This document shows positions 26,488 to 48,034 of a stretch of DNA of 64,000 nt, in pieces. The DNA lies in the sequence record MT135025.1; one strand, written 5' to 3'. The notes beneath the pieces are model-generated. The model saw only the letters and a list, made by a program, of their open reading frames with translations. It ran no database searches and was not told the origin of the DNA. How positions within the stretch are numbered: position 1 is the stretch's first letter; the number at the start of each line of letters is the position of its first letter. Made by a program: the position numbers and the translations under genes.

Positions 26488-26506
26488 TTAAAACTTGGGA
26501 GAGTAT

Positions 26507-27937: not shown

Positions 27938-30078
27938 TGCCAAAACAAGAAGAATTGAAGGTAATGGAAAAGGATAAACAGATTCATTACCTTCGTAAAT
28001 ATATTCGAGATGCTCGTGATTATCAGGACGAGAAACTACAAGAGAACTGGAAACAAGCTCAACGCTACTACTACGGCGAGAAGATGGGCAATGAAGTTGA
28101 AGGTCGTTCTCAAGTAATCTCACGAGATGTCTCAGATGCCATTGACTGGATGATGCCAGATTTGATGGAAATCTTTGCAACAGATTACAATGCTGTGCAA
28201 TACGAAGCTCGTACTCCTGCCCATGTAGATGGTGCAGAACATATGAGTAACTACGCTAACTACACATTCTTTAACCTGAATGAAGGTTTCATGATTATGC
28301 ATCAATGGTTTAAAGATGCACTAATGTTTAAGCGTGGTATTGTTAAGCATTACTGGACGGAAGAAACTAACCAAACAGCAGAATACTACACAGGCTTATC
28401 AAATGATGGTGTTACAGCAGTTCTTGCAAAAGACGGTGCTGAACTATTAGAGATTGCCGAGAATGAAGATGGTACGTTTGATATTAAGATTTCTGTAGAA
28501 GAAACTAAACGTTACATCAAAGTAGAGCCTGTTCCGCCAGAAGAGTTCTTGATTGACCGAAATGCTAAGTGTGTTAAAGACGCTACATTTGTTGGTCATC
28601 AACGTAAAGTTACTAAGGCTGACCTATATGAAATGGGTTATACAGCCGAACAAATTGAAGAGTTAAATAACTACGATGAAGATGACCCATCTGATTCTGA
28701 ACTACGACTAATCCGTGAGATGTATAACGGTGCTCAGACACACGATTATGACGATTACGGAAATGACCCAATGAACGACAAGTATTGGATTATTGAAGCG
28801 TATGTTCGTATGGATGTGGATGGTGATGGCTTTAATGAGCTACGCCGAATCATCATGTGTGGTAATACAATTCTGAGTGATGATGACTGGGACTTTGTAC
28901 CTTTTTCTTCATTAACTCCTAACCCTATTCAACATCAGTTCTACGGTCAATCTATTTATGACATGGTTCATGATGTTCAAGAAGTTAAGACAGCCCTTCT
29001 TCGTAACCAACTAGACAATATGTACTTGATTAACAATGGTCGCTATGCTGCCGTTGAGGGTCAGGTTAACTTAGCTGATATGCAAAATAACAAGCTAGGC
29101 GGTGTAGTTCGTGAGAAGATGCAAGGTGCATTACGACCTCTAGTACAGCCTGAGTTACCGAAAGGTACTTATGATATGGTTGCTTACTACGATGAGATTA
29201 AAACAAACCGTACTGGTGTTTCTCCTCGTACACAGGGTCTTGATGACAAGGTTCTAAACTCTCATACTGGCTCTGGTCAAGTTAACCGAGTTATGTCTAC
29301 TGCTGAGAAACGACTGAAATTAGTAGCTCGTATCTTTGCTGAGACAGGTGTTCGTGATTTGTTTATTGCTATTAAGCAACTTGCAATGAAACACCAAGAT
29401 GAGCAGATGAGCTTCCGTCTTAACGGTAAGTACGTAACAATTGACCCAGCTACTTGGCGTGACCAAGTGGATATGAAAGTTCTTGTAGGTAACGGTACTA
29501 AGGATAAAGACCAACAACTTATGCACTTGATGCGTATGTTTGAATTGACACAAAGCATTGTGGGTAATGGCGGTCTAGGTATCTTAACCAATGAACAGAA
29601 GATTTACAATCTATTAACTAAGATTACTGAAAACGCTGGTTATACAGATGTAGAGGAGTTCTGGTTAGACCCAACTACCGAAGAAGCTTTAGCAGCTAAG
29701 AAAGCTCGTGCAGAGGAAGCAGCTAAACCTACACCTGATGAAATTAAGGCTAATGCAGACGCTCTGAAGAAACAGTCTGATTCGCAAGTTGACCAGCTTA
29801 AGGTACAACAGGAAGCGAAGAAGAATGATGTGGAAAGTCGAATTAAGCTTAAAGAACTTGAGCTTCGAGAACGTGAGATTGCGTTGCAAGAACGTGAGCA
29901 AGCGCTTCAAGAAGACATTCAAGACATGGAGCGAGAAAAGTTTGAGTGGGCTAAACAAGTTAACATCGCTGAAGTCGTCCTTACTAAGGAAACAGAGAAA
30001 GCTGTCTCAATCGGAGATGGAAAGCTCTACAAAGGACGAAACAAAGGCCAAACAGATTCAGGCAATACTGGACAGTAA
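27937..30078 (+). CDS. portal protein (P22/PaP3-type)
   Basis: 713 aa after terL; GRSQVISRDV, FKRGIVK, C-terminal coiled coil. Confidence 0.92.
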   Translation: MPKQEELKVMEKDKQIHYLRKYIRDARDYQDEKLQENWKQAQRYYYGEKMGNEVEGRSQVISRDVSDAIDWMMPDLMEIFATDYNAVQYEARTPAHVDGAEHMSNYANYTFFNLNEGFMIMHQWFKDALMFKRGIVKHYWTEETNQTAEYYTGLSNDGVTAVLAKDGAELLEIAENEDGTFDIKISVEETKRYIKVEPVPPEEFLIDRNAKCVKDATFVGHQRKVTKADLYEMGYTAEQIEELNNYDEDDPSDSELRLIREMYNGAQTHDYDDYGNDPMNDKYWIIEAYVRMDVDGDGFNELRRIIMCGNTILSDDDWDFVPFSSLTPNPIQHQFYGQSIYDMVHDVQEVKTALLRNQLDNMYLINNGRYAAVEGQVNLADMQNNKLGGVVREKMQGALRPLVQPELPKGTYDMVAYYDEIKTNRTGVSPRTQGLDDKVLNSHTGSGQVNRVMSTAEKRLKLVARIFAETGVRDLFIAIKQLAMKHQDEQMSFRLNGKYVTIDPATWRDQVDMKVLVGNGTKDKDQQLMHLMRMFELTQSIVGNGGLGILTNEQKIYNLLTKITENAGYTDVEEFWLDPTTEEALAAKKARAEEAAKPTPDEIKANADALKKQSDSQVDQLKVQQEAKKNDVESRIKLKELELREREIALQEREQALQEDIQDMEREKFEWAKQVNIAEVVLTKETEKAVSIGDGKLYKGRNKGQTDSGNTGQ

Positions 30079-30241
30079 GGTCTTTCAAGAAGCAATGGAT
30101 GATTTAAGGGCGGATGCTTTAATCCGCTCAATGGTTGCGGAGGCTGATGAAGTCTCCCTTCAATACAAACGAGAAGCTAAGGCGGTTGATGCTATCATCA
30201 CCCAACTGGAAATTAAACTTAGCGAATATAAAGGAGAGTAA
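30017..30241 (+). CDS. small head-region protein
   Basis: KAKQIQAILDSKVFQEAM pattern between portal and scaffold. Confidence 0.55.
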   Translation: MESSTKDETKAKQIQAILDSKVFQEAMDDLRADALIRSMVAEADEVSLQYKREAKAVDAIITQLEIKLSEYKGE

Positions 30242-30246
30242 GATTT

Positions 30247-31317
30247 ATGAGTACAAACGCTACGCCTGTTATTGGGCACGGACCGAACAACCTTGATGAA
30301 GGACTCGATTTGTCAGCGGCATCTCAGCACGACGTATTCCAGTCGATGGCTAACGAAATGCTAGGCATTGAAGAGGAAGAAGTCGAACAAGAAGTGGAAT
30401 CCGAAGAGGAGGAAGCTGAAATTGAAGAGGAGCTAGACGAGGACGAATCAGAAGAGGAAGAGGTCTCTGAGGAAGACGATGAGGATGAAGAATCCGATGA
30501 AGAATCCGATGAAGAGGAAGCCGACGAATCTGAAGATGAAACTACCGATAGCGAAGTCTTCTTGGTCAAAGTTGATGGAGAGGAACTCGAAGTAACTGGT
30601 GATGAACTGGTTCAAGGTTATCAACGTCAGCAAGACTATACACGTAAAACTCAAGAAGTTGCAGAAGAACGTAAGCGTCTACAAGAGCATTATGCCGAGC
30701 TAGAAGCTGAACGTACTAAATATGTAACCGCTCTTGACCAACTCATTCAAGAAGAATCTAAAGAACTAGAGAAATACAATGAGGTTGACTGGAATAAACT
30801 TAAACAGGAAGACCCAAACCAATTCCTAATTCTTCAATACGAATTGAATGAGGCACGTACAGCGCTACAATCTAAGATGGAAGCCCGTAAACAAGCTATT
30901 GAGCAATCAACCTCAGAGAAAGGCTTGAAAGAGGCAGACTATCTAGCAGCTCAAGAGAAACGAGCAGCAGAGATTGTTGAGGGGTGGCGTGGACCTGAGC
31001 ACGACAAGTTGGTGCAAGGACTACAAGAACAAACACAAAAGCTAGGTTTTGAAGATACTGATAAAGACCTTCTTAAACATGCTATTGTTATTAAGCTACT
31101 CCAAAAGGCTAAGGAATATGACGACTACAAAGCTTCTCAGACTAAAGTGGTAGAGAAGAAATTGAAGCGTAAAGTTCCTAAAGTAGTCAAATCAGGAAAG
31201 AGTGCTACAGGTAAGACTCAAGATAAATCTCAGAAGAAATATCAGGAGTCAATGGCACGTCTTCGTAAAACAGGTAATATCAAAGATTCAGTTGACGCTT
31301 TTAAGGCGTTTCTATAA
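30247..31317 (+). CDS. capsid scaffolding protein
   Basis: Very acidic N-terminus, VKVDGEELEVT.DELVQGYQRQQDYTRKTQ motif. Confidence 0.9.
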   Translation: MSTNATPVIGHGPNNLDEGLDLSAASQHDVFQSMANEMLGIEEEEVEQEVESEEEEAEIEEELDEDESEEEEVSEEDDEDEESDEESDEEEADESEDETTDSEVFLVKVDGEELEVTGDELVQGYQRQQDYTRKTQEVAEERKRLQEHYAELEAERTKYVTALDQLIQEESKELEKYNEVDWNKLKQEDPNQFLILQYELNEARTALQSKMEARKQAIEQSTSEKGLKEADYLAAQEKRAAEIVEGWRGPEHDKLVQGLQEQTQKLGFEDTDKDLLKHAIVIKLLQKAKEYDDYKASQTKVVEKKLKRKVPKVVKSGKSATGKTQDKSQKKYQESMARLRKTGNIKDSVDAFKAFL

Positions 31318-31332
31318 GAGGAATAACTAATT

Positions 31333-32376
31333 ATGGCAGATTTTAACAGTACAGTATCAGTCGGTAAACGTGAAGACCTAGCGGACGTAATCTACAACGT
31401 TGACCCGTTTGAAACCCCAGTAATGAACTCGATTGGTCGTGGTTCAGCACACAACATCGTATGGGATTGGCAGGTAGATGAAATCGGTAAAGGTCATGCG
31501 ACAGATACCATCGTACCAGAAGGTCATGACTTTACTCAACAAGAGCAACAGTCTACTGACCGACTAAGCTCAATCATGCAGATTAACGAGCGTGGTTTCG
31601 GTATCACTGGTACTGATGAAGCAATCAAGAAAGCTGGTCGTGGCTCAGAGCTTGCTTACCAAATGGCTAAGGTTTCTAAGAAACTGAAGATGGATATGGA
31701 GATGCAGCTTGCAGGTGGTCACCACCAGTACACTGATAACGGTGGTAACGTTGCAGTAGCTCGTAAGACTCCATCTGTATCTAGCTGGATTTCTAAGAAC
31801 GTTATCCAAGTAGACGGCACTAACAAATCTACACTGACTGGTAATACTCCAGCTCCAGTGACAGGTGTTGCTAATGGTCGTGGTGTATGGCAAGAGCCAG
31901 GTGCTGCTTCTACAGCAGAGCTTACTGAGACTCACCTACAAGACCTATTGACTGGCATCTATATGGAGTCAGGTCGTTCACCAAACACACTGGTTGTTGA
32001 CCCTAAAACTAAGACCAAAATCTCGAATACTTTCGTAGGTCGAGCGACTGGTCAGCTACAGCAATCAGCTAAGGACAAGACTGTTCAGTCAGTTGTTGAT
32101 GTGTACATCTCGGACTTTGGTACCCTACGTATCATGCCTTCACGTTACATCGGCGGTGACTTGGAACAAGGCGGTATGGCACTAGCGCTAGACACTTCAC
32201 AGTGGTCTATCGACTTCCTACGTAGCTTCAACACCTACGACTTGCCTAAGACTGGTGACCACATGCGTAAGGCACTTAACGTTGAGTGGGGTCTACGTTG
32301 TAACAACGAGTTAAGCTCTGGTATGATTATCGACTTTGCGAAAGGTAACCCATTCGCTTCTGTCCCAGTAGCTTAA
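31333..32376 (+). CDS. major capsid protein (DUF5309-like)
   Basis: GKREDLADVIYNVDP.ETP, KKLKMDME, EWGL; followed by a strong terminator. Confidence 0.92.
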   Translation: MADFNSTVSVGKREDLADVIYNVDPFETPVMNSIGRGSAHNIVWDWQVDEIGKGHATDTIVPEGHDFTQQEQQSTDRLSSIMQINERGFGITGTDEAIKKAGRGSELAYQMAKVSKKLKMDMEMQLAGGHHQYTDNGGNVAVARKTPSVSSWISKNVIQVDGTNKSTLTGNTPAPVTGVANGRGVWQEPGAASTAELTETHLQDLLTGIYMESGRSPNTLVVDPKTKTKISNTFVGRATGQLQQSAKDKTVQSVVDVYISDFGTLRIMPSRYIGGDLEQGGMALALDTSQWSIDFLRSFNTYDLPKTGDHMRKALNVEWGLRCNNELSSGMIIDFAKGNPFASVPVA

Positions 32377-32389
32377 TAACTAACGACAA

Positions 32390-32420
32390 GCCCTCTCCTT
32401 CGGGGGAGGGTATTTTTATT
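32390..32420 (+). terminator. rho-independent terminator (UUCG loop)
   Basis: CCCTCTCC-TTCG-GGGGAGGG-TATTTTT. Confidence 0.85.
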
Positions 32421-32434
32421 TGGAGAGTATAGAA

Positions 32435-32740
32435 ATGACACAGAAAAAAGATTACCGTACAGAATATAAAGAACAAGCAGATGGTTCATTAGAACTTAAA
32501 CACGTACAGAAAGTTGACCACATTATCGACACTAACAAGGAACTACAGAAAGAGAATCAAGGCGGCAAGGATATGAAACTAGCTGCACGTATTCCTATGA
32601 ACGTTATCTTCCAGTGGCAACAAGAAGGTATTGATATGACTCTTGTGGGTGTTGACCCTGATATGACAGCTAAGTTCTGGAAGAAACTACAGAGTCCTGA
32701 GTGGGCTAACCTGCGTGTTTGGAAAGGCAAAATGGTGTAA
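32435..32740 (+). CDS. hypothetical virion protein
   Basis: AARIPM.V..QW pattern after the capsid gene. Confidence 0.7.
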   Translation: MTQKKDYRTEYKEQADGSLELKHVQKVDHIIDTNKELQKENQGGKDMKLAARIPMNVIFQWQQEGIDMTLVGVDPDMTAKFWKKLQSPEWANLRVWKGKMV

Positions 32741-32743
32741 GAC

Positions 32744-33448
32744 ATGTATGACACTTTTAAAGAACTAGAAGATGCTGTAATTGATTGGATTGACCGTGAG
32801 GATATTCGTCCTCGTGCTAAAGACTTTATCCGATTAGTTACATTAAAAGCTGCTCGACAGCTACGAGTTCCTACTATGGAACGAACCCAGATTGTTGACT
32901 TATATGAAGATGGTTCTGTACAGATTCCAACAGATTTAGTAGAGCTTATCTCTATAGACTATCTGGTAACAGAACCTAAAGAAAGTAACCCTGACGAAGA
33001 AGTAGTACTACGTAGACACTCTTTGAAGAAGGGTTCAGTATATGAATTTAAAGATGCGGTAGATAAATACTTTACCAGTGGCATTGGGGGTGTTCCACAG
33101 AAGTTTGCTCGTGAAGGTTCTCTTTACAAAGTGTTCCCTCTCAAAGCTTATAGTGAAGATATTGTAGGTGGCTTTACTGGTACATTTGACAAGTACGGTA
33201 AGGTTGAAGTACACTACTTTGCTCTACCAACTACACTACAATTTGATGACGACACAAACTGGCTGTTACAGGTAGCTCCTGAAGTTTACTTGTATGGTGC
33301 TTTATCTCATGCTTATGAGTTTGTACGTGATTATGAGACAGCAGCTTTCTGGAACTCACGTATGGAAACGTCTATTGCTGAGATTCAAGCATGGAGCATT
33401 CGAGCTGATGACCAAGGTGGTTTGTGGGAAGTTCCACTAGGGAGTTAA
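32744..33448 (+). CDS. head-tail adaptor / tail tubular protein A
   Basis: L..AV.DWIDRED...FI.L; NWLL..APEVYLYGAL..A. Confidence 0.85.
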   Translation: MYDTFKELEDAVIDWIDREDIRPRAKDFIRLVTLKAARQLRVPTMERTQIVDLYEDGSVQIPTDLVELISIDYLVTEPKESNPDEEVVLRRHSLKKGSVYEFKDAVDKYFTSGIGGVPQKFAREGSLYKVFPLKAYSEDIVGGFTGTFDKYGKVEVHYFALPTTLQFDDDTNWLLQVAPEVYLYGALSHAYEFVRDYETAAFWNSRMETSIAEIQAWSIRADDQGGLWEVPLGS

Positions 33449-33452
33449 ATAA

Positions 33453-33792
33453 ATGGCTACAGAAAACGGTTTCTTTACAAACCAAACACAATTTCAGAAT
33501 GACCCTAACGTATCTCAACGAGATAACCTAAAGGGTTTTTATGGTACTGCTGTTCGTCCAGCTTACGTTGAGGATTTGGTTGCTAAGGCAGAAGAAGCCG
33601 CAGCCAAGTCATACGAATACAGCCAAAACTCTAAACAGTATAGAGATGAGGCTGAAGTTATTCGTGACCAGACACAGGTTATAAATGACCAAACAGACCA
33701 AGTCTATAATGATACTGTACAAGTGTACAATGACACAGTAGGCGTATATAACGATACAGTAGTACAAGCTAATAATGCTGCACAGAGTGCTA
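33453..33792 (+). CDS. tail fibre N-terminal part (continues on the minus strand from 59203)
   Basis: VYNDT heptads; 33725-33792 is the exact reverse complement of 59204-59271. Confidence 0.85.
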
Positions 33793-33917
33793 TCAGACCA
33801 CGTTGAAGTGAATTTATCACACGCCAACGCTTTTGCGTTTATACGGGCGTTTGGTGTAAATGATGGCGACTCGAAGAGCGGCGTACTAGGTAAAGGTCGA
33901 GCTTTCGTAGGAGCAAC
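33792..33917. repeat. 126 bp exact inverted duplicate of 45289-45414
   Basis: Direct reverse-complement comparison. Confidence 0.92.
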
Positions 33918-34188
33918 AAACGAAATTAAAGCACGTCTAAGAGTAGATCGTGTGGTGTATGAAATGTCTGACAGGGAAGGGTGGCTTGCGGCTCTTCAGC
34001 ACCCTATTTTTGACTATGGCGAGGGTCCTGAAGTTGATCGAACATATCTAGTCGGGGCATTTAAAAACTTCTATATCGTGTTGACTAGTCAAACAAGTCT
34101 AAAAATATACACCGATGATGCTGCGTTTACAAAATATGTGAATGCTTTCGACGCGCCATGGTTAAACCCAGAAATAATGGAATCTTAA
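33792..34188 (+). CDS. segment B hypothetical protein, 5'-truncated
   Basis: Open frame from the junction to TAA 34188. Confidence 0.6.
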
Positions 34189-34190
34189 AA

Positions 34191-35042
34191 ATGAAATTTA
34201 GCGAATATCAAAACGAGCTAACAGAAGCATTTGATCGACCAGCACCGATCACAGCACGTCGCGGCAATCAGAGTTTTTTCATGATTGGTGACACTGAGTA
34301 CATGGTCGGGTTGTATTACGACGACTCGAAAAAATCACTCGGAGTTGACTTCATGCATAAGCCGGGTGATTCAGCAACGTACTACTACAGCTTAGCCAAA
34401 GGCAACTCAAAAGACGCAATGACTGTTTTTGCCACAGTGATTGCAGAAATCAAGCGACTTATGAAAGACAACCCGGTAAACAAAATCAGCTTTAGCGCGT
34501 TTCAAGACTCTGATAGCTCAGATGCTAAAAAGCGTTTCCGTTTGTACAAGCGTATGGCAGAACGTTTCAGCAAAGAGCTTGGGTTCAGAATGACCACGTA
34601 TGGCGATTCTTTCACCATGACACGTATAAATCCTGTTGCAGTCAATGTAGAAGAGCCAACTGGTTATGATACAGCGTGGGGTACTGAAATGCTCGATCTG
34701 TATGAAGTCAACGACGCTGCAATTGCCAAAGTCACAGAAGGTGATGGTGAATGGCGTTTGAATAACTGGAACAAGCTGATTGTTCGCAACGGTAAAGTAA
34801 CACTAACATCGGGTCCAATTCGAATGTCAGACGCTTGGTACGATGCGTTTTACGACTTAGAATGGTATCACGATGAAGAAGGCGAACAATGGTTCGATGA
34901 TGAACAGAAGATCGCGATCATCAATGGTAAAGTTTGGGTCATCCACGACATGGAAATTACTATTTGGCCAAGTATTGAGAAATTAGAATTGCAAAGTGAC
35001 TCGGAATTATCAAGCGGGACACGTCAATTGCTTGGATATTAA
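34191..35042 (+). CDS. segment B hypothetical protein (T4-like virion-type N-terminus)
   Basis: MKFSEYQNELTEAFD..; GNSKDAMTVFATV; RFRLYKRM. Confidence 0.7.
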   Translation: MKFSEYQNELTEAFDRPAPITARRGNQSFFMIGDTEYMVGLYYDDSKKSLGVDFMHKPGDSATYYYSLAKGNSKDAMTVFATVIAEIKRLMKDNPVNKISFSAFQDSDSSDAKKRFRLYKRMAERFSKELGFRMTTYGDSFTMTRINPVAVNVEEPTGYDTAWGTEMLDLYEVNDAAIAKVTEGDGEWRLNNWNKLIVRNGKVTLTSGPIRMSDAWYDAFYDLEWYHDEEGEQWFDDEQKIAIINGKVWVIHDMEITIWPSIEKLELQSDSELSSGTRQLLGY

Positions 35043-35047
35043 TCAGA

Positions 35048-35072
35048 AAGGTAGCTTCGGCTACCTTTTTTC
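35048..35072 (+). terminator. rho-independent terminator (UUCG)
   Basis: AAGGTAGC-TTCG-GCTACCTT-TTTT. Confidence 0.9.
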
Positions 35073-35092
35073 GTTTTCAGAGCAAAAAACGG

Positions 35093-35140
35093 TTGCATGA
35101 AATGCTCAAAACCCCTATTATAGCTTCATCGAAACGAAAG
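35093..35140 (+). promoter_or_regulatory. early sigma70 promoter of segment B
   Basis: TTGCAT-N17-TATTAT followed by ATCGAAACGAAAGAGG. Confidence 0.7.
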
Positions 35141-35151
35141 AGGAAAACGAA

Positions 35152-35451
35152 ATGGATGTAACATCAAAACTTGAATTGTCGATGAAAGAGTTCGTTGACG
35201 TTCCATACAACGAGCACAAAACTCATTCTCTTGTTGGTCAAGCAAGTGAGCACATTAACTCGTACTACAACAATCCGGGTGAAATCGTGACTTCAAACGT
35301 CATGTACGTTGAAATCAACGGTGGTATTGTGTATGCTGTAACGCACTCTAAGAGTCGCTACCAGCTAACCAATGTGTCTCATGATGAGATTGCGCAAATG
35401 GTTAAAGCCGCAAGCGAACGCGGGATTAATATTCCGCTTTACAAAAACTAG
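35152..35451 (+). CDS. hypothetical protein
   Basis: GAGG RBS. Confidence 0.7.
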   Translation: MDVTSKLELSMKEFVDVPYNEHKTHSLVGQASEHINSYYNNPGEIVTSNVMYVEINGGIVYAVTHSKSRYQLTNVSHDEIAQMVKAASERGINIPLYKN

Positions 35452-35512
35452 AAAAATTGCTTTAATACAAACTGATTCACTACTTTTGATTACTTTTTGA
35501 GAGAAATATATT

Positions 35513-35827
35513 ATGACTACTATCGTAAACTTCACTGCTGCAATCGAACTAACTACTAAAGCTCTTGTTGAAACTAACCGTATCGAAGGTCGTTTCTACA
35601 ACTCACGTATCGGTCACGAGCAAGGTGAGCAAGCGAAAACTGACGCAGTTCGAGCGTTCAAAGTAATCGACAACAAAGTATATGCTGAAACTCGCAACTG
35701 CGTGTTCCATCTTCGCAATCTGTCTGCTCTTGCACTAGCTGACTTCAACACTATCAACGCACCAGTGTACATGAAGAAAGCTGATGCTGAGTTCGACGAG
35801 ATGGTTAAAGCAGCCCTGTTCTCGTAA
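35513..35827 (+). CDS. hypothetical protein
   Basis: 104 aa, high-expression codon usage. Confidence 0.75.
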   Translation: MTTIVNFTAAIELTTKALVETNRIEGRFYNSRIGHEQGEQAKTDAVRAFKVIDNKVYAETRNCVFHLRNLSALALADFNTINAPVYMKKADAEFDEMVKAALFS

Positions 35828-36279
35828 TGTACCCGAAGAATAAAAGCTATTATGACTTGGTGTATCTTGACATCGCCAAGTCATTTGCTAAAAAAAGCAC
35901 CTGCAAGCAGAAGCAAGTAGGTGCTGTCATCGTCAAGAATGATCGCATTATCTCACACGGTTACAATGGTACGCCGTCAGGCATGCTTCACTGTAAAGAT
36001 ACCGCTGACTTCGGTGATCTAACTCACCGTCAATGGTCAGAAATTCACGAGATTCATGCTGAACAAAACGCGATTTGCTACGCTGCACGCGCTGGCATAT
36101 CTACTGAAGGCGCGACTATGTACGTCACAGCGTCGCCGTGTCATAACTGTGCCAAGCTGATAGTCGCGGCTGGTATCAAAATTCTCATTGTAGGTTCGAT
36201 TTACAGCGGTTCGCAACCCGATTGGTGGCACTGGCTACGTGATCGCGGTGTGAAAGTTATTATGTTCGAAGACGAATAA
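35827..36279 (+). CDS. dCMP deaminase
   Basis: STC...VGAVIV, GYNG.PSG, HAEQNAI, SPC.NC.K Zn motifs. Confidence 0.95.
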   Translation: MYPKNKSYYDLVYLDIAKSFAKKSTCKQKQVGAVIVKNDRIISHGYNGTPSGMLHCKDTADFGDLTHRQWSEIHEIHAEQNAICYAARAGISTEGATMYVTASPCHNCAKLIVAAGIKILIVGSIYSGSQPDWWHWLRDRGVKVIMFEDE

Positions 36280-36333
36280 TGTTTAATATAAGTAATTCGG
36301 ACTTATAATAGAGCTTTAACAAGAGAGAAACAT

Positions 36334-37260
36334 ATGAAAAGTACAATGTTTTTGAACAACATCACATGCATCGACCATGCATGGGTTGATGATATGGGTG
36401 AAATGAATGGTAATAGCTACAATCTATGTGTAGAAATTACCGGTGAAGTTGACGAGACTGAACAAGTTGTTATTGATTTCAGTGGTTGTAAGAAAGCAAT
36501 CAAACATCTTGTGGATGATTCTGAATTCGCCATTGATCATCGTCTAGTCGTCGTTGACGGGTTTAGTGATGCAGTTCTTTCTCAAGTCGAAGATCGACTA
36601 CGCATTCAAATCGACACGCCGGTCTTTCATGCAGTGTCCACGGTTGACGACTGGTATCAAGTCATCAAGCCGAGCGAATTGATTGAAGCCGACTTTAAAA
36701 TCCCTAGCGATTCTCTGTACATGTCGTATGTTACTGAGTATCTTGAAGATATGCTGCTTGAACAGCTACGCAAGCAAGGTTATCCCGTTACACACGTCGC
36801 TGTAGAGCTTTCAGAGTCGTTTGACTTACCATCATGGGCAAACAGTCACGTTGAATTCAATTACGCTCACGGACTGCGTTCAAGCACATCATACGGATGT
36901 CAGAACATTGCACACGGTCATCGTTCATTCATTGCAGTAGATCAGCATTTGAACAGTAACGGTCGCAAGGTGCTGAAGCGCATTGCTAAAGAAATGAGCG
37001 GTTATATTGCTTGGTCAGAAAACATTCGCAAAGAAGATGAAGTGTCTTACACTTCAAAACGCGGCAACTTCTACTTGAGACACAGCAATATCAAAGTAAT
37101 CCCGACGGAAACTACAGTCGAAAATCTAGCCAATTACATTGCAACTACATACGAAGAAGAGTTCCAACGAATGGGAGTTCAGCGTGTGTGGGTATCTGAG
37201 GGTCTATCAAAAGGCTCGGTTGTAGACATCAAAATCAACAAAGAATTGCTCTATAAGTAA
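36334..37260 (+). CDS. queD: 6-carboxytetrahydropterin synthase QueD, tandem-domain form
   Basis: Two T-fold repeats; second has HGL..C..IAHGH.S and TTVENLA; first has degenerate NGNSY; VIDF, DH. Confidence 0.8.
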   Translation: MKSTMFLNNITCIDHAWVDDMGEMNGNSYNLCVEITGEVDETEQVVIDFSGCKKAIKHLVDDSEFAIDHRLVVVDGFSDAVLSQVEDRLRIQIDTPVFHAVSTVDDWYQVIKPSELIEADFKIPSDSLYMSYVTEYLEDMLLEQLRKQGYPVTHVAVELSESFDLPSWANSHVEFNYAHGLRSSTSYGCQNIAHGHRSFIAVDQHLNSNGRKVLKRIAKEMSGYIAWSENIRKEDEVSYTSKRGNFYLRHSNIKVIPTETTVENLANYIATTYEEEFQRMGVQRVWVSEGLSKGSVVDIKINKELLYK

Positions 37261-37280
37261 TCAACAAATTAATGTTTAGT

Positions 37281-37305
37281 AGCACGTCTCGGCGTGCTAT
37301 TATTG
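37281..37305 (+). terminator. hairpin, possible terminator
   Basis: TAGCACG-tctcgg-CGTGCTA-ttatt. Confidence 0.5.
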
Positions 37306-37328
37306 TTTTCTATCAATGAGGAAATAGA

Positions 37329-37997
37329 ATGTTAGACAAAAATAAAGTAGATCCAGTACTTGGACAAAAAGTTGAAGCGCATCTTCGTAAAATCGGGATG
37401 CACACGCCGACTGTTGAAAACGGTCTAACTGATGATGAAAAGAAAGCTATTCTTGAAGATCGTTTCACTGACATCATGCAAGCTCTTGGTCTTGACTTAT
37501 CAGACGATTCATTAGTTGATACTCCGAAGCGTTGGGCTAAGATGATGGTGAATGAGCTTATGAGCGGTCTATCGCCAGATATGTTCCCGAAATGTACTGC
37601 TGTAGACAACAAGATGAACTACGATCAGATGGTTTGCGAAAAAGGAATTACTGTTCTTTCTCAGTGTGAGCATCACATCGTAACAATCGACGGCTTTGCC
37701 ACTGTCGCATACATTCCGAAGAACAAAGTTCTTGGTCTGTCGAAAATGAATCGCATCGTTGAGTACTTCGCTCGTCGTCCGCAGATTCAAGAACGTCTGA
37801 CTGTTCAAATCGCTGAAGCACTGAAGTTCATTCTTGAAACTGAAGACGTAGCGGTATTGATCGACGCCAAACACTATTGCGTGAAAGCACGCGGTGTTGA
37901 AGATAACAACTCAAGCACAGTGACTAGCCACTTATCTGGTGCTTTCCGTAACGAACCAGAGGCTCGCGCTGAGTTTATGTCACTTGCACGAGGGTAA
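37329..37997 (+). CDS. folE: GTP cyclohydrolase I
   Basis: TPKRWAKM, SQCEHH, GLSK..R, RRPQIQERLT, HYCVKARG. Confidence 0.97.
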   Translation: MLDKNKVDPVLGQKVEAHLRKIGMHTPTVENGLTDDEKKAILEDRFTDIMQALGLDLSDDSLVDTPKRWAKMMVNELMSGLSPDMFPKCTAVDNKMNYDQMVCEKGITVLSQCEHHIVTIDGFATVAYIPKNKVLGLSKMNRIVEYFARRPQIQERLTVQIAEALKFILETEDVAVLIDAKHYCVKARGVEDNNSSTVTSHLSGAFRNEPEARAEFMSLARG

Positions 37998-39377
37998 TTG
38001 ATGATAATTGAATACGTTATGTCTGCGACGGGTCATGCTCGTCTCGGCGCAGCACATAAGCTAATGGACGTGGTTGACACGTCCTATTTGCGCGACATTT
38101 TAAATGCAGCGCAAGATCTCGACGGCGTTCACAAAATCAGTATGCTGTACAATGCATATACTGAAAAGAAAGTCGGTCATCAAATCAATGACTTGTTCGG
38201 TGATTCTGTATACAAGGTACACGTCGATTCGGGTGGTCTACAGATAGTCAACTTGGGTTTAGAGAACACGCCCGAACTTCGCAAAGCAGTATACGAGAAT
38301 CAAGCAGAATCTGGTGATATTGGCATGTGTTTTGACGAAATCCCATTGCACAACGAAGCAAAGGGTGGTGGCGCTGCTCGTATCAACACGAAAGACAAGG
38401 TCTTCATGTATGATCTAGCGTACAAGTACGGCGTCAAAACAGGTAAGAACATTCGCGCACAAATCGAAACTTATATCGAGAAGGGTAGCAAATGCAAACC
38501 GTATATCATCTTACAAGGCAACTCAGACGACGACTTTAAAGCATTCAGTGACGGGATTATGTCTCAACTCGAAGGCGTTGAAGATCACATTGCTGGTTGT
38601 GCTGCTGCCGATACATGCATTGGTAATGGCGTACGTGAGTCTATCGACATGATGAGCGTCATTCCGAAACTCAACATCCCAGAGAAAGCAAAGAAATCAG
38701 TGCATATGCTGGGAGTTGGCTCAGTTAAACGTCTATTGCCTGCTGTAGCACTTATCAGAAGTGGTTATTTTGGCGATGACTTTCATATCAGCTATGACTC
38801 ATCAACGCATACTGGATGTCTGACTAACCGAGAATACACTGATAAGCTTGGTCGTCGTCGTAAGATCTCGGGTCACGGCATCATGAAAGATGGTAAGAAA
38901 TTGCCTTCTCGTGAGCTTGATGAAATGCTAGATGAAGTGTGGGGTCGATTCGGTCATGCTCTACCGCGTAGCAAAGAAGAGTTCAAGGAATTCGCGACAC
39001 GTCTGTGGTTGAAAGAACTCGACAAAGAAACAATGACTGACGAAGATATTGTGTTTGAAGTTGCTTGCAACTTGTGTATAATCTTATCACAGGTCAACAA
39101 CTTTCAAGCGATTATATCTGAAACGTTTGACTTGAATACGCCAAAAGCTGCTGATCTGTCAGCGTTCTTCGGTGGTTCTGTTGAGAAAAAAGAGCCGCAA
39201 GAGGGATTCAAGAAGTGGTCAGCGATTCGTCGCCTTGATGTTCTTGATAAACTACTTGACGTTAAAACTATCGAAGCCTATGACCGCTGGCACAGTAGCT
39301 ACGTTGATAGACTACCGTCAATGCGCATTCGTAGAGGCACAACTGCTGAATTCCCAGCGTTCAAAGAACAAGAATAG
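37998..39377 (+). CDS. TGT-fold 7-deazaguanine transglycosylase (DpdA/TGT-like)
   Basis: DSGG.Q, .MCFDEIP, ILQG, VHMLGVG, SYDSST motifs; no zinc-binding CxC motif evident; adjacent to folE/queD/queF. Confidence 0.75.
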   Translation: MMIIEYVMSATGHARLGAAHKLMDVVDTSYLRDILNAAQDLDGVHKISMLYNAYTEKKVGHQINDLFGDSVYKVHVDSGGLQIVNLGLENTPELRKAVYENQAESGDIGMCFDEIPLHNEAKGGGAARINTKDKVFMYDLAYKYGVKTGKNIRAQIETYIEKGSKCKPYIILQGNSDDDFKAFSDGIMSQLEGVEDHIAGCAAADTCIGNGVRESIDMMSVIPKLNIPEKAKKSVHMLGVGSVKRLLPAVALIRSGYFGDDFHISYDSSTHTGCLTNREYTDKLGRRRKISGHGIMKDGKKLPSRELDEMLDEVWGRFGHALPRSKEEFKEFATRLWLKELDKETMTDEDIVFEVACNLCIILSQVNNFQAIISETFDLNTPKAADLSAFFGGSVEKKEPQEGFKKWSAIRRLDVLDKLLDVKTIEAYDRWHSSYVDRLPSMRIRRGTTAEFPAFKEQE

Positions 39378-39406
39378 CGCCTTTGGGCGCTCTTTATGAG
39401 GTAAAC

Positions 39407-39544
39407 ATGAGCAATTATGATCAAGTTTCAGCTATTGCTGCTGAACATTTAGGTAAAAAAGCTGGCGATTACAGCGATTTCGTTGACATCGTAGAAGTTC
39501 GCCCTGATTTACTCGTGCCGATCCCGCGTGAACTGAATCGAACT
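39407..39544 (+). pseudogene. queF: QueF (preQ0 reductase) N-terminus, truncated by a junction
   Basis: HLGK...Y....PDLLVPIPRELNR matches the QueF N-terminal LGK/LLxxVPRxLNR pattern; GAGG RBS. Confidence 0.7.
39418..39544. repeat. 127 bp exact inverted duplicate of 54918-55044
   Basis: Direct reverse-complement comparison. Confidence 0.92.
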
Positions 39545-39658
39545 CACTAAATCATTTGATGATACAGAAGCGTGACCGAAGTGAGTGTCGCTCGTAAATG
39601 TGATTGTAGTCATAATTTTCTCTTTCGTTGTTTCGTTTCGATAGACACATATTATCGC
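39545..39658 (-). other. foreign fragment: B-type promoter leader plus start of a metallophosphoesterase-like ORF
   Basis: Reverse strand ATCGAAACGAAAC..GAGAAAATT-ATG then MTTITFTSDTHFGH. Confidence 0.6.
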
Positions 39659-40168
39659 CATCTTACTCCTTTTCGTCACACTTCAGTCACTATTCGATGC
39701 AAGGAGCCTATCTTCCTTGCCCGTCAGCTAGGTAAACATCAAGCTGGCTTGAGCTGGAATGAAGTGTCACGACGTTACGTAAAAGGTGATGCAGAGTTTC
39801 ATGTTCCATCAGCTTGGCGACTAGCTCCTGATGGTAGTATCAAACAGGGCAGTGCAGGTGTGCACCCTAGCTCTGGTCAATTCTCTGCTGCTTACAAAGA
39901 CTTCATCAACAAAGCAGAAGATTTCTACAACAGCTTGATTGAAAATGGCGTTGCTCCTGAGCAAGCCCGTATGGTTTTACCACAGTCAATGCTAACTGAG
40001 TGGGTTTGGACTGGTAATCTGCTAGCTATGGCTCATATCTACCGTGAACGAATTGCATCTGGAGCACAACTTGAAGCACAATACTTCGCAAGAAAACTGG
40101 ACGACGCCTTACAGCCGCTTTTCCCTGTGGCTTGGGCAGCGCTTACAAAACCTAACGCAATCAAATAA
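39659..40168 (+). CDS. thyX: flavin-dependent thymidylate synthase ThyX, 5'-truncated
   Basis: H.TPFRH, PIFLARQL.KH, SWNEVSRRY, PEQARMVLPQS, AQLEA. Confidence 0.92.
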   Translation, partial: HLTPFRHTSVTIRCKEPIFLARQLGKHQAGLSWNEVSRRYVKGDAEFHVPSAWRLAPDGSIKQGSAGVHPSSGQFSAAYKDFINKAEDFYNSLIENGVAPEQARMVLPQSMLTEWVWTGNLLAMAHIYRERIASGAQLEAQYFARKLDDALQPLFPVAWAALTKPNAIK

Positions 40169-40178
40169 GGAAACAAGT

Positions 40179-40403
40179 ATGGCAACTGTAGACATACGCA
40201 ATCATGGCGCTAAAATAGATGGTATAGTGTTTGCAGATAAAGAGGGCGGCGAGGGTCGCCTCTATAAGCTGGAGCGTTTTGTACCTGTACAATTTCACCT
40301 CGTAACATCTAGCGGAATGAGAGTCCATGTAAAAATGGATGATGTTGACAACCTTATTGAAGCCCTAAAGGCAGCTAAAGAGCTTTGGGGCAAAACAAAT
40401 TAA
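40179..40403 (+). CDS. hypothetical protein
   Basis: AAGGA RBS, start MATVDI. Confidence 0.65.
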   Translation: MATVDIRNHGAKIDGIVFADKEGGEGRLYKLERFVPVQFHLVTSSGMRVHVKMDDVDNLIEALKAAKELWGKTN

Positions 40404-40417
40404 ACGAGAGAAAAATC

Positions 40418-41167
40418 ATGGAAAATAGAAAGCACTTCTTCGGTAACTTTAAAAAGATTATCGACAGCTTGGTAGTAGACACCCACCCACATAGTGAAAA
40501 TGGCGGTGTTGTAGTAGTTGCGGGGGGTTTCCTCCGTGACTTACACCTAAGACGACAACCTAAAGATATTGACATCTTCTTTAGTGGTCCACAGTCGTCA
40601 CAAACTATCTTTAAGCATTTAAAGGAGAAGAACCCTGAACTGTTTAAAGACTGCAAGCATAAGTTCTACTGTGATGAAAACTATGGTATGGAAGAAGAAG
40701 AAGTTAAAGGTAACTTTGCTGTCTACGACCTAGTTAAAGTTGAACTTACAAATGGTTTAAACATTGACATCATTGCAACACAACGTGTGTGGGAACAGCC
40801 TTGGGAGTTATTAGGCAACCACTTTGATTGTAACTTAAACGCCCTAGCATATGATGGTCAGACTTTGTTTGCACCTAATGGTATGCCTAACAAGGATGGT
40901 ATCTTCTTCCCTCTTGGCGGTGCATACATTGACAACCAAGTTACTAAAGAGCGTATGATTCGCTTAGTACAGAAAGTTCCTTTCGGTAATTTCCAAGCCT
41001 TTAGTCAGTTCTTCCCTAATGATTGGGATGAGATTCTAGAAGCACGTAAGAAAGCACAAGAAGCTGAACGCAAAGAACTGGCGAAAGCAGCACAAGCTGA
41101 AGCCGCAGCAATGGCAGCGGTAGTACCAGGAATTATTCAAGACGAAGCAGCACAACTGGAGTTTTAA
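40418..41167 (+). CDS. nucleotidyltransferase (CCA-adding/poly(A) polymerase head-domain-like)
   Basis: VAGGFLRD....PKDIDIF (GG..RD..DxD), IDII, FD..LN.LA. Confidence 0.8.
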   Translation: MENRKHFFGNFKKIIDSLVVDTHPHSENGGVVVVAGGFLRDLHLRRQPKDIDIFFSGPQSSQTIFKHLKEKNPELFKDCKHKFYCDENYGMEEEEVKGNFAVYDLVKVELTNGLNIDIIATQRVWEQPWELLGNHFDCNLNALAYDGQTLFAPNGMPNKDGIFFPLGGAYIDNQVTKERMIRLVQKVPFGNFQAFSQFFPNDWDEILEARKKAQEAERKELAKAAQAEAAAMAAVVPGIIQDEAAQLEF

Positions 41168-41169
41168 TA

Positions 41170-41295
41170 ATGGATAAGCAATACAACAAATCTCGTTACG
41201 AACGTAAGCGCAAGTACAAAAACAAACAACAACAACGTCGTCGCCGTTATGGTGATGACTATGACAAAGGCTTTGGAGGTAACTGTGGAGAATAA
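41170..41295 (+). CDS. small highly basic peptide (41 aa)
   Basis: Manual ORF MDKQYNKSRYERKRKYKNKQQQRRRRY... Confidence 0.5.
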   Translation: MDKQYNKSRYERKRKYKNKQQQRRRRYGDDYDKGFGGNCGE

Positions 41296-41435
41296 TTTCA
41301 CTGTTCACACTAAACGTACACTAGAAGCGCTCCCATTGGTGGAGCGTTTGTACATCCAAGAGAAACACAAAATTCATTTTAAGTATAAGCGTGGTGATAT
41401 TGTTTACCATTGTTTCATGTTTTAAAGGAGAATAG

Positions 41436-43136
41436 ATGGCAAAAATTATTGGCGATACGGCTTGTCCTAAGTGTAGAGAAAATGGTAGAGACAAAACTGG
41501 CAACCACCTAATGATTTTCGATAATGGTAATGGCTACTGCAATCGCTGTGGTTTTGTCCATCGAAAAGATAAGATGGGTGAGGTTAAGCCAGTTCCTCGA
41601 CCTATCAAATCTCCTGAAGAAATCAAAGCTGAGTTGGATGAGGTTAAAACTTATCCGATTCAAGCTCTTGGTAGTCGGAAGATTAGTAAAGAAACTGCCG
41701 ACAAGTTAGGTATCCGTGTGGCGCTGAGTGAGGAAGATGGAAAGACCCAAACTCAGCACTACTACCCGTATACTCGTGAGAGTAAACTGAGTGGCTATAA
41801 CGTTCGTAACCTTGGCATGAAGTCATTCTACGGTGTTGGTGAACGTAAGGGTGTTGACCCATTCAACTGGTTCAATGCTCGTCGTGTAGCTACTCGTAAA
41901 AAGATTATCATATGTGAGGATGAGCTATCTACAGCATCCGTTGTTGAGGTGTTCGACAAGTACACCAAGGATAAGCAATGGCTTCCTGCTGTAATTGGCT
42001 TGGCAACATCCCCACAAGGTATTGTACAAGAGCTAGGTCGTACTCATATCAAAGACTTCTTATTGTCATTTGATGAAATTGTATTCGCATTGGATAATGA
42101 CGAGGCTGGTGAAGAGGGTCTGAACCAAGCACTGCAACTATTCCCTGATGCTAAGTTCGTGGACTTACCGCTTAAAGACCCTAACGATATGAAGATGGCT
42201 GATATGGAAGTAGAACTCTACAACCTTATCAACTTCAATGCACGTCGTAAACAACCATCTGGTTCTTTGACTCTACACGACCTCAAAGAGCGTATGCTTG
42301 CTCCTGTTGAGAAAGGTTACTCATTACCTTGGGAGAAGCTAAACAAACACACTAACGGGCTTCTGATGGGTCAGATTTGGACTATCGGTTCTGGTGTAGG
42401 TATTGGTAAAACATTCTTGGCTAACTCTATTACAGCTTGGTTATGGAAAGAACACCGTATCAAGTCTGGTCAAATTATGTTGGAGCAACCTGCTGAGGAA
42501 TCTGGTCGTGCTATTGTAGGTGCGATGACAGGTCAGCATTTCAATGACCCTAAGATTCCAATGAACAGAGAGAGATTAGCTGATGCTATCGACGACGTTG
42601 GTAACAATATTTATTTCTATGATGCTGTGCGTAATGCTGATTGGGACGAAATCAAACCAGTCATTAGACACTGGGTGGTGGTGGAAGGCGTCAAAGTTAT
42701 ACAGCTTGACAATCTTACTACACTCACTGCTCATCTTGATAGTTCTACTGCAAACACCGAAGTAAATAGAATCATGGCTGAGCTGGCTATGATGTGCAAG
42801 AAGTATGAATTCTCTGCATTCGTATACAGCCACTTGAACCCGCCTAAGACAGGCGATAGCCATGAAGATGGGGGTGAGGTTAAGGAAGTACAATTAACAG
42901 GCTCTCGTGGCGCTATGCGTTACTCTAGCTATGTGATTGGCTTTGAACGTAACCGTAACCCAGCTCTTCCACAAGAGGAGCAAAACCTAAGCCGTATTCG
43001 ACTGATGAAGTGTAGACCTATTGGTTCTACCCCAACCATTGTCGGTACATATTACAATCCTGCAACGGGATTAATTGAACAACGAGAAGAAATGCACCTA
43101 CCTAAAACACCTAAGCTTGTGGGTGGGGGCGATTAA
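41436..43136 (+). CDS. T7 gp4-type DNA primase-helicase
   Basis: CPKC..CNRC Zn finger, CEDE..A, LD.D.AG TOPRIM, GSGVGIGKT, LDNL, SHL, GS. Confidence 0.95.
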   Translation: MAKIIGDTACPKCRENGRDKTGNHLMIFDNGNGYCNRCGFVHRKDKMGEVKPVPRPIKSPEEIKAELDEVKTYPIQALGSRKISKETADKLGIRVALSEEDGKTQTQHYYPYTRESKLSGYNVRNLGMKSFYGVGERKGVDPFNWFNARRVATRKKIIICEDELSTASVVEVFDKYTKDKQWLPAVIGLATSPQGIVQELGRTHIKDFLLSFDEIVFALDNDEAGEEGLNQALQLFPDAKFVDLPLKDPNDMKMADMEVELYNLINFNARRKQPSGSLTLHDLKERMLAPVEKGYSLPWEKLNKHTNGLLMGQIWTIGSGVGIGKTFLANSITAWLWKEHRIKSGQIMLEQPAEESGRAIVGAMTGQHFNDPKIPMNRERLADAIDDVGNNIYFYDAVRNADWDEIKPVIRHWVVVEGVKVIQLDNLTTLTAHLDSSTANTEVNRIMAELAMMCKKYEFSAFVYSHLNPPKTGDSHEDGGEVKEVQLTGSRGAMRYSSYVIGFERNRNPALPQEEQNLSRIRLMKCRPIGSTPTIVGTYYNPATGLIEQREEMHLPKTPKLVGGGD

Positions 43137-43153
43137 ACGAGGAAATATACACG

Positions 43154-43600
43154 ATGGCTATTTATAAAATTCAACGAGAGAAAATTGGTAATATCACACA
43201 CCTAGTGCGTGTTCAGGTTCTGCCTTTTGATGTATACTGCAAAGTATGTGAAGAATATCATGACGCTGTTATGGGTGATGAGGATGATTTTACTATCCAT
43301 ACGGAATGTAGTTGTGCTATTGATGACTTCTACACTGAAGAACAGTATGAAGATTTAGAAGAAGAGCGTGACCGTTGGGAAATCAGAGCGGAAGAGCTTG
43401 AAGAAGAGCGAGATGAAGCTGTTGCAGACAAAGACCGTCTTGAACAGGAATATATCCAAGAGATTCAAACACTTCGTGATAATAACGAACTAACTAACAA
43501 CACTCTCGAAATCGAACGTGAAGAACACCAAGAAGCCATCGAGTTACGTGATAATATTATTGATGAACTGGAAGCTAAGCTTCGTGAATTGGAGGGTTAA
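43154..43600 (+). CDS. hypothetical acidic coiled-coil protein
   Basis: 148 aa; CxxC, CxC; TAATG-coupled to pol. Confidence 0.7.
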   Translation: MAIYKIQREKIGNITHLVRVQVLPFDVYCKVCEEYHDAVMGDEDDFTIHTECSCAIDDFYTEEQYEDLEEERDRWEIRAEELEEERDEAVADKDRLEQEYIQEIQTLRDNNELTNNTLEIEREEHQEAIELRDNIIDELEAKLRELEG

Positions 43601-45288
43601 TGGAATCATTTGTTTCTGGACTAGGTGAGGTCTGGTGTACTGACATCGAATCAACAGGTCTCATCGAGGACATGAAGAAGCAATCTAATCCAATGCTTCA
43701 CTGTTTTGGAGCGATTAACCCAGAGACGGGTGAGAGACGTTTGTTCTCTCGCTCAAATGGTAAACTAGGCTCTGAACTACAGGCATTTCTAGATAGCGGT
43801 GTCACTCTAGTTATGCATAATGGAATCTGTTTCGATGGTGAAGCACTCAAATATTTGGGTTACAGTGTGGACAAGTGCCGTATTCTTGATACTCTTGCCC
43901 TTAGCTGGTACCTTAATCCTCGGCTAAACAAGCACGGTCTTGAATACTGGGGTGAGGTATTTGGAGTACCTAAGCCACCTGTATATGATTGGGTTAACGA
44001 AGACCCATCTGTGTACGACCACCGAGTCATGGAAGACTGTGAGATTCAGTTGCGACTCTGGCGTATGCAACAACAACAGCTCAATGAGATTTATGATACA
44101 GCTAAGAGCAAAGGTAAGCTACTTGATTATCTTATGTTCAAGATGGAACTTCAACGTATCCAAGCTCTTAACAAATGGAAGCTTGATATTGATGGCTGTC
44201 ATAAACTTATTGCAGAACTTGAGGCACGTAAGGATGAACGATTCGATGCACTTCAATGCTCAATGCCAAAAGTACCTGTCAAAAGTAAGAAAACAAGACC
44301 AGCTAAGCCTTTCAAAAAGAATGGGGATTTATCAGCGACAGGTCTTAAATGGAAAACTCTTACCGAGGAACATGGGCTACCATTCGAATATGACGGCGTT
44401 ATTGAAGTCATTACAGGATACGTCGAACCAAACGCTGGCTCACATGTACAAATCAAAGACTGGCTCTTCTCCCTAGGTTGGGAGCCACAAACTTTTGACT
44501 TTAAACGTAACAAGGAAACAGGGGAAACACGGAAGATTCCTCAGATTAGTGATGGCAATGGCGGTGTATGTAAATCCGTAGAGAAGCTGATTAAGAAGTA
44601 TCCTGACAAGGGTATTGATAACTTAGCAGGTCTTGGTATTATCAGCCACCGCTTGAGTATCGTTAAAGGTTTCTTAAGAGAGGTAGACGATGACGGATAC
44701 ATCGCAGCAAGATGTAACGGGTTCACTAACACGTTGCGTCTCAAACATGCTGGACTGGTTAATTTACCATCCACTCGTGTTCCATACGGTAAGGAAATTC
44801 GAGGGCTACTCGGCTGTCCAGACGGATACCAGAACATTGGTTCTGACTTATCGTCCTTGGAAGACCGTTGCAAACACCACTTCCAATGGAAATACGACCC
44901 TGAGTATGTTAAACTCCAGATGCAAGAGGACTATGACCCCCATCTACAAGTATGCTTACTCGGCGGGTTGCTCACGGAGAAACAGATTGCAGCGCACAAA
45001 GCAAAGCAAGAAGACCACTCAGACACAAGGCACATCGGCAAGGGCGGTAACTACGCTTGTCAGTACGGTGCAGGCATCGAAACGCTGATGCGTCAGCTAG
45101 GCATTCCTTTAGAGGTTGCTAAAGCTGTACACTCAGGTTATTGGAAACTAAACTGGTCAATCAAAAAGATTGCTCAATCAACAACGGTGAAGCATGCAAA
45201 TGGAGAAATGTGGCAATATAACCCAGTATCAGGTCTATGGTATTGGCTTAAAGCAGACAAGGACAGATTCTCAACTCTTTGTCAGGGT
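43600..45288 (+). CDS. polA: family A DNA polymerase, 3'-truncated before motif C
   Basis: TDIEST exo I, HNG..FD, DLSSLEDR motif A, K..NYACQYGAG motif B; sequence switches to the inverted duplicate at 45289. Confidence 0.92.
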
Positions 45289-45414
45289 GTTGCTCCTACG
45301 AAAGCTCGACCTTTACCTAGTACGCCGCTCTTCGAGTCGCCATCATTTACACCAAACGCCCGTATAAACGCAAAAGCGTTGGCGTGTGATAAATTCACTT
45401 CAACGTGGTCTGAT

Positions 45415-48025: not shown

Positions 48026-48034
48026 GGAGTTTTA

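Follow-up and report, generated by a model that had tools for sequence, protein, structure and literature searches.

A probable 7-deazaguanine DNA-modification module of a KVP40-like Vibrio phage, with queF truncated by assembly, in the mixed-phage record MT135025.1

Introduction

The window analysed here is a stretch of 64,000 nucleotides that corresponds, with 100% identity, to positions 285332-349331 (the final 64 kb) of sequence record MT135025.1, which is 349,331 bp long and is entitled "UNVERIFIED_ORG: Vibrio phage V07". Between window positions 35827 and 39550 lie five tightly spaced open reading frames (ORFs), all on the + strand and separated by short intergenic gaps. A preliminary description, made from the letters alone, read them as a co-oriented 7-deazaguanine modification cluster, queD-folE-transglycosylase-queF, next to a dCMP deaminase gene and with queF cut by a junction. 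The locus therefore raises the questions of which phage the cluster belongs to, which nucleic acid it modifies and with which base, and whether the break in queF is real.

We consider, with a probability of roughly 0.9, that this stretch holds the middle portion of the module by which a KVP40-like (Schizotequatrovirus) Vibrio phage modifies its DNA with 7-deazaguanine, and that the cut in queF is an artefact of a mixed-phage record. The gene identities, the fold of the transglycosylase DpdA2, which resembles that of tRNA-guanine transglycosylase (TGT), the near-identity to proteins of the phages KVP40 and VH7D and the occurrence elsewhere in the record of the genes absent from the window were observed here; that preQ1 is inserted into DNA, that QueF is active and that virion DNA contains dPreQ1 is taken from published work on close relatives.

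In the proposed mechanism, FolE (as the first step) and a QueD-like protein, both encoded in the window, would act together with QueE, whose gene lies at a distance of about 80 kb, and QueC, whose gene directly follows queF, to convert GTP to preQ0, which a bimodular QueF would reduce to preQ1. DpdA2 would then exchange a fraction of the guanines in the phage DNA for preQ1 after replication, and the resulting dPreQ1 would hinder host restriction enzymes. During assembly, the KVP40-like backbone would have lost a 5.75-kb piece that was instead placed between pieces of the podovirus.

Results and discussion

Gene content and relatives of the cluster

The coordinates and gene calls of the preliminary description proved correct, as judged by the ORFs, the profile matches and the DpdA/TGT fold. 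The genes, which together span window positions 35827-39544, are in order:

35827-36279, + strand: cd, dCMP deaminase, 150 aa; PF00383, 86.5 bits (cut-off 25); PHROG 174, E 1e-61
36334-37260, + strand: QueD-like protein with two T-fold halves, 308 aa; PF01242, 41.4 bits (cut-off 22.4), in two stretches
37329-37997, + strand: folE, GTP cyclohydrolase I, 222 aa; PF01227, 206 bits; NF006824, 301.4 bits (cut-off 202); TIGR00063, 236.5 (cut-off 181.6)
38001-39377, + strand: dpdA2, putative 7-deazaguanine DNA transglycosylase, 458 aa; ATG start, with an alternative TTG start at 37998
39407-39544, + strand: queF 5' fragment, codons 1-46 of the 302-codon bimodular QueF; 100% identity to KVP40 QueF residues 1-46

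The same genes occur in the same order and orientation in KVP40 as KVP40.0119-0123. Identity is 100% for the dCMP deaminase (KVP40.0119), the QueD-like protein (KVP40.0120), FolE (KVP40.0121) and QueF residues 1-46 (KVP40.0123), and 99.6% for DpdA2 (KVP40.0122). The difference from KVP40 is that queF in the window ends after codon 46, at a seam, and that queC and the genes downstream are not in the piece. Going by the order of the RefSeq numbers, KVP40.0120 corresponds to NP_899368, and by consecutive numbers the homologues of the QueD-like protein, FolE, DpdA2 and QueF are NP_899368-371. These KVP40 proteins have already been listed as a deazaguanine cluster, comprising QueD (NP_899368), FolE, DpdA2 (NP_899370) and QueF (PMC6884629 supplement).

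The order is also that of VH7D, to which identity is 92.8% for DpdA2 (over 458 aa; YP_009006086), 96.8% for FolE, 96% for the dCMP deaminase and 93.5% for QueF residues 1-46. The QueD-like protein, only 76% identical, evolves fastest: its neighbours are 93-97% identical between KVP40 and VH7D. Identical gene order is found in more than 40 Schizotequatrovirus genomes, so that the arrangement is not due to chance, and the cluster is unbroken in the sister record V09 and in all other relatives examined. A promoter and terminator scan of positions 33700-39700 gave counts near the shuffled expectation (15 versus 11.9 and 8 versus 4.8, respectively), and conclusions about an operon were therefore not drawn.

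The putative transglycosylase DpdA2

The 458-residue protein was recognised solely by structure prediction combined with a fold search. Sequence searches gave no match in Pfam, in NCBIfam, in the PDB with phmmer or in the PDB with an 84-sequence profile, and the canonical TGT family PF01702 was absent from the Pfam scan. The protein matches PHROG 10773, which is unannotated. The AlphaFold2 model (pLDDT 91.1, pTM 0.91) finds as its best PDB match with Foldseek the bacterial DpdA structure 7UI4, a DNA preQ0 insertase (E 2.6e-7), followed in the list by eukaryotic TGT catalytic subunits (QTRT1). In VIA-align the model aligned with TGTs over 309-322 residues at Z-scores of 17-18 and with DpdA at 14.1, compared with about 13 for unrelated TIM barrels.

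The predicted (beta/alpha)8 TGT-type fold is common to DpdA2, 7UI4 and QTRT1/TGT, and the family has DSGG-type and Y-D-S motifs, the latter with a conserved Asp, that may be counterparts of TGT motifs. However, the identity to 7UI4 and to TGTs is only 12-17%. The CxCxxC zinc motif is absent from DpdA2, and the 84-member family alignment has no conserved Cys column. The C-terminal helical region of the model (about residues 300-458) is particular to the family, unlike 7UI4 or TGT. Invariant in the same alignment are D76-S-G-G-L-Q, F-D112 (in FDE), Q154, G173, H235-x-L and Y-D266-S. D76, D112 and D266 may be the equivalents of TGT Asp102, Asp156 and Asp280, on the basis of the TGT motifs rather than of a residue-level superposition.

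An exhaustive HMMER search yielded 382 representatives of the DpdA2 family. Even distant relatives (30-40% identity, on T4-like metagenomic contigs) adjoin folE, PTPS or QueC genes, while in KVP40, PG216 and VH7D folE lies upstream and queF and queC lie downstream of dpdA2. One of the T4-like metagenomic contigs with a distant DpdA2 (L008) also has, a few genes downstream at 12814-13290, a gene whose product contains a domain of the ADP-ribosylating exotoxin type (PF03496).

On these homology and model-based grounds the 458-residue protein is assigned to the DpdA2 subfamily as a distant enzyme of the TGT fold. The fold results agree with the literature, where DpdA2 is presented as related to TGT in a way that is visible to sensitive methods only (PMC6884629).

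Predicted target and product of the module

By analogy with the VH7D and nt-1 orthologues, on which the experiments were performed, the window DpdA2 is predicted to insert a 7-deazaguanine base into DNA. VH7D DpdA2 put preQ1 into plasmid DNA in Escherichia coli at about 2,800-3,700 per million nucleotides; it accepted preQ0 and CDG as well, with lower efficiency, and an E. coli queF deletion could be complemented with VH7D QueF (PMC10516641). In the Schizotequatrovirus 6E351A, a nucleoside whose mass fits dPreQ1 takes the place of about 15% of dG; the deazaguanine cluster was described there as core to the genus, and evasion of restriction-modification was proposed (PMC12028318). Given the near-identity to KVP40 proteins and to the tested VH7D proteins, the phage represented in the window should likewise make dPreQ1. 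The preliminary claim to this effect thus gains support from the DpdA2 and QueF comparisons with KVP40 and VH7D and from the published data on relatives.

The same description cited dPreQ0 and dPreQ1 as reported in phage nt-1, in which DpdA2 was defined. The former holds, but dPreQ1 was below detection in nt-1 DNA, which contains dADG and dG+ besides dPreQ0 (PMC6884629). The nt-1 protein is the founding member of the DpdA2 subfamily, and nt-1 belongs to the same phage genus and has the same preQ0 genes as the window phage; it differs in using ArcS in place of QueF.

A module that served tRNA, supplying more preQ1 for queuosine in host or phage tRNAs (Asp, Asn and His) through a TGT-like protein acting on tRNA, would account for the finding that the highest structural Z-scores of the DpdA2 model are those of tRNA-guanine transglycosylases, and KVP40 does have tRNA-Asp, tRNA-Asn and tRNA-His among its about 25 tRNAs. 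We nevertheless judge this very improbable. Both VH7D DpdA2 and its nt-1 orthologue modified plasmid DNA with deazaguanines in E. coli (PMC10516641), dPreQ1 is present in virion DNA of relatives (PMC10516641, PMC12028318) and no QueA, QueG or QueH was found in such phages (PMC6884629). Moreover, the top Foldseek match is a DNA-modifying enzyme and the zinc motif of TGT is missing. A side effect of the DNA-modification module on the host preQ1 pool may occur.

The preliminary description also allowed for a derivative beyond dPreQ1, which appears unlikely to arise via DpdM, the published preQ1 methyltransferase of VH7D. A scan of VH7D for the motif CxxxCxxCC, which served as a positive control, found one ORF, CF80_gp081 (304 aa), which matches PF03692 (YkgJ-type) weakly; in KVP40, whose sequence was scanned in pieces, no ORF has the motif. 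In tblastn searches CF80_gp081 matched the VH7D clade (phi-ST2 and phi-Grn1 among its members) and a few other phages, with no match in KVP40, V07, V09 or PG216. CF80_gp081 is likely to be DpdM, and a little mdPreQ1 has been found in the DNA of phi-Grn1 and phi-ST2 (PMC10516641). The VH7D clade would thus differ from the KVP40/V07 clade in possessing DpdM. As the KVP40 clade has no CF80_gp081 homologue, methylated dPreQ1 is not expected there, and V07 phage DNA should carry dPreQ1 as its end product with no methylated form.

Supply of preQ0 and preQ1

FolE scores above the curated equivalog cut-offs of both NF006824 and TIGR00063. The QueD-like protein is presumed to be a CPH4 synthase. Its N-terminal half aligns with E. 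coli QueD residues 27-67 and has MxxxNGN at the aligned position of the QueD signature CxxxHGH, so that the Cys and His of the signature are lost, while its C-terminal half contains AH...C-x4-HGH, which is one residue longer than CxxxHGH. The protein matches PHROG 14221, for which the function is listed as unknown. A MAFFT alignment of T-fold halves (four sequences) was too poor to locate the motif, and the sole match of the C-terminal half in the PDB, a nanobody, was rejected as spurious.

The queF fragment in the window is without the catalytic part. Full-length KVP40 QueF consists of QueF_N (PF14819) and QueF (PF14489) domains. In the KVP40-like backbone of V07, elsewhere in the same record (locus L003), queF residues 5-302 are followed by queC and then by a 202-aa gene, as in KVP40. 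The two V07 queF pieces share a 127-nt block as an overlap (block B, below), and queF of the phage is therefore complete.

The queC gene (PF06508, 183 bits) lies directly 3' of the two-domain queF in KVP40, PG216 and VH7D, as it does in the V07 backbone. In KVP40, queE is KVP40.0284, at 153.7 kb and about 80-81 kb from the cluster, with weak radical-SAM and 4Fe-4S matches; its V07 counterpart is 99% identical and lies at record positions 201425-202306. Both genes are thus phage-encoded, in keeping with the preliminary suggestion that they lie outside the fragment.

Two further KVP40 genes may be mentioned. KVP40.0125 (L004 9528-10136; V07 record 123247-123855, outside the window), directly 3' of queC, encodes 202 aa beginning with MCGLF, a start of the N-terminal-nucleophile type of class-II glutamine amidotransferases, and has no Pfam or NCBIfam match. 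As an idea only, it may supply ammonia to QueC in the manner of a split Gat-QueC fusion. A second QueC-like gene, KVP40.0258, adjoins two radical-SAM genes (L011 498-4161; KVP40 133498-137161) and is the KVP40 QueC of the 2019 supplement, which is not the exsB gene adjoining queF (PMC6884629).

The break in queF and the make-up of the record

The break in queF falls exactly at 39544|39545, where KVP40 reads on GACTACGG and the window reads on CACTAAAT. The sequences on and around the two sides are as follows:

1 to about 11650: siphovirus-like part; 88% identity to 58-kb siphoviruses, e.g. vB_VpS_BA3
12150-23514, 24129-33741, 39654-45287, 45412-54918 and 55154-64000: podovirus-like parts; 92-97% identity to the 50-kb IME234/VPp1-like podovirus
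33792-39544, + strand: KVP40-like assembly piece, 5,753 bp; 98.5% identity to PG216 and KVP40 over 5,758 bp
33792-33918: 127-nt end block A of the KVP40-like piece; exact reverse-complement copy at 45288-45414; identical to L003 5732-5858
39418-39544: 127-nt end block B of the KVP40-like piece; exact reverse-complement copy at 54918-55044; identical to L003 5859-5985
39545-39654, - strand: 110-nt scrap of a distant KVP40 locus (KVP40 126490-126599); 100% identity to L010 43599-43490; marks the seam, outside the cluster
39654-40168, + strand: 3' part of thyX of the IME234/VPp1-like podovirus; PF02511 profile positions 48-191 only; 97% identity to IME234 from 15219 onwards

The size of MT135025.1 is close to the sum of 244, 58 and 50 kb, the genome sizes of a KVP40-like phage, a siphovirus and a podovirus, and the record is a scrambled concatenate of these three types. 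The podovirus pieces are scrambled in order and mixed in orientation. The KVP40-like piece starts in the middle of the KVP40.0115 homologue, stops at queF codon 46 and is podovirus-like on both flanks. A separate source genome, which the preliminary description proposed to recover as "B", does not exist: the remainder of the phage is in the same record and in the sister record V09.

Blocks A and B abut in the V07 KVP40-like backbone, from which the 5.5 kb that separate them in KVP40 (L004 positions 2361-7849) are missing. A check for microhomology at this A|B join showed it to be blunt, with a nearby GAGCAA similarity not used. The reverse-complement copies of the two blocks sit as isolated scraps between podovirus pieces, as does another KVP40-like scrap of 122 nt at 23518-23639, and the seams fall inside a podovirus tail-fibre gene, thyX and a DNA-polymerase gene. 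The exact 127-nt blocks would be explained as contig-end leftovers of a de Bruijn assembly at k = 127. Further exact repeats join piece ends over 68 nt (33725-33792/59204-59271), 63 nt (50304-50366/63294-63356) and 44 nt (62429-62472/63957-64000).

The truncation of queF at 39544 is therefore an assembly artefact and not biology, as is evident from the exact end blocks, the blunt join, the absence from the backbone of exactly this piece, the presence there of the rest of queF and of queC, the unbroken cluster of V09, the scraps and the seams within genes. The cut that was noticed in the preliminary description is thus a real break in the deposited sequence, but the phage gene itself is not interrupted.

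Two biological explanations of this arrangement were weighed. If a podovirus or hybrid phage had gained the 5.75-kb cluster by recombination in a mixed infection, queF would be truly truncated and dPreQ0 the most that could be made. The deposited sequence does set the piece between podovirus segments, and the three phages evidently shared one lysate during growth. On the other hand, the record is flagged UNVERIFIED_ORG and has the summed size of three genomes, its seams cut podovirus genes and carry the exact 127-nt blocks and the 110-122-nt KVP40 scraps, and the podovirus pieces are themselves disordered and inverted while the backbone is without exactly this piece. A mixed-infection move of such an anti-restriction module (cd, queD-like, folE, dpdA2 and a truncated queF) from a T4-like jumbo phage into an unrelated podovirus is hardly credible on this evidence, and we give a biological junction of any such kind next to no weight. 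Were it true, the seams would be real and the record would show a DNA-modification cluster at the moment of its passage between phage families.

Slightly less improbable, though still unlikely, is that the A|B join stems from a genuine mutant, present in the lysate, in which cd, queD-like, folE and dpdA2 (5.5 kb) are deleted, with the window piece as the wild-type allele of an assembly bubble. A piece whose end blocks abut in the main path does also resemble a deletion bubble in a de Bruijn graph. However, the two blocks meet bluntly, boundary to boundary, with the nearby similarity left unused, unlike in a microhomology-mediated deletion, and a simple bubble does not explain why the same blocks also occur as isolated scraps between podovirus pieces. 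Plain contig concatenation accounts for everything seen, and nothing requires a deletion.

Neighbouring genes and other features

The zinc motifs HAE and PCxxC are both visible in the translation of cd, and the gene also adjoins the deazaguanine genes in KVP40, PG216 and VH7D. No functional tie of dCMP deaminase, an enzyme of nucleotide metabolism, to the deazaguanine pathway was found.

On the other side of the break, thyX and the adjoining nucleotidyltransferase gene were considered as cluster members and rejected, both being podovirus genes. The latter (40385-41167) has a weak match to the poly(A) polymerase/CCA-adding head domain and is annotated as a tRNA nucleotidyltransferase in IME234; it adjoins thyX and the primase/helicase gene and has no relation to the deazaguanine cluster. 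In the siphovirus-like part, a low-complexity stretch at 4450-4680 (+ strand; within 4001-5000) translates as a Cys/Gly/Ala-rich ORF, with high local GC content (0.53) and strong AT skew (-0.29).

Points that weigh against the assignment

Several observations count against the interpretation of the stretch as part of a preQ1-inserting module displaced by assembly. The QueD-like protein is without the CxxxHGH signature and scores 35.1 bits with TIGR03367, below the NCBIfam QueD cut-off of 89.25, and KVP40 QueF, at 224 bits, is below the TIGR03138 cut-off of 293. The modification figures come from relatives and not from KVP40 or V07 DNA itself, and among these relatives the level ranges from about 0.1-0.2% of nucleotides (phi-Grn1 and phi-ST2) to 15% of dG (6E351A). 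The specificity of DpdA2 varies among close relatives, the nt-1 enzyme having failed to insert preQ1 in the assay (PMC10516641). The equation of CF80_gp081 with DpdM is our own, drawn from the published motif and from the presence of the gene in phi-ST2 and phi-Grn1 rather than from an accession in the paper. Finally, the assembler and its k-mer size are undocumented and were deduced from the 127-nt blocks.

Conclusions

The cluster, the DpdA2 subfamily and the dPreQ1 product have already been described for this phage genus, between 2019 and 2025, and the locus accordingly carries little biological weight. Its practical value concerns the data quality of MT135025.1: truncations, junctions and odd neighbourhoods in this record, such as queF beside thyX, are not to be taken as biology. 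For the biology of the genus the analysis offers a refinement, namely that phages of the KVP40 clade should carry dPreQ1 without the methylated derivative of the VH7D clade.

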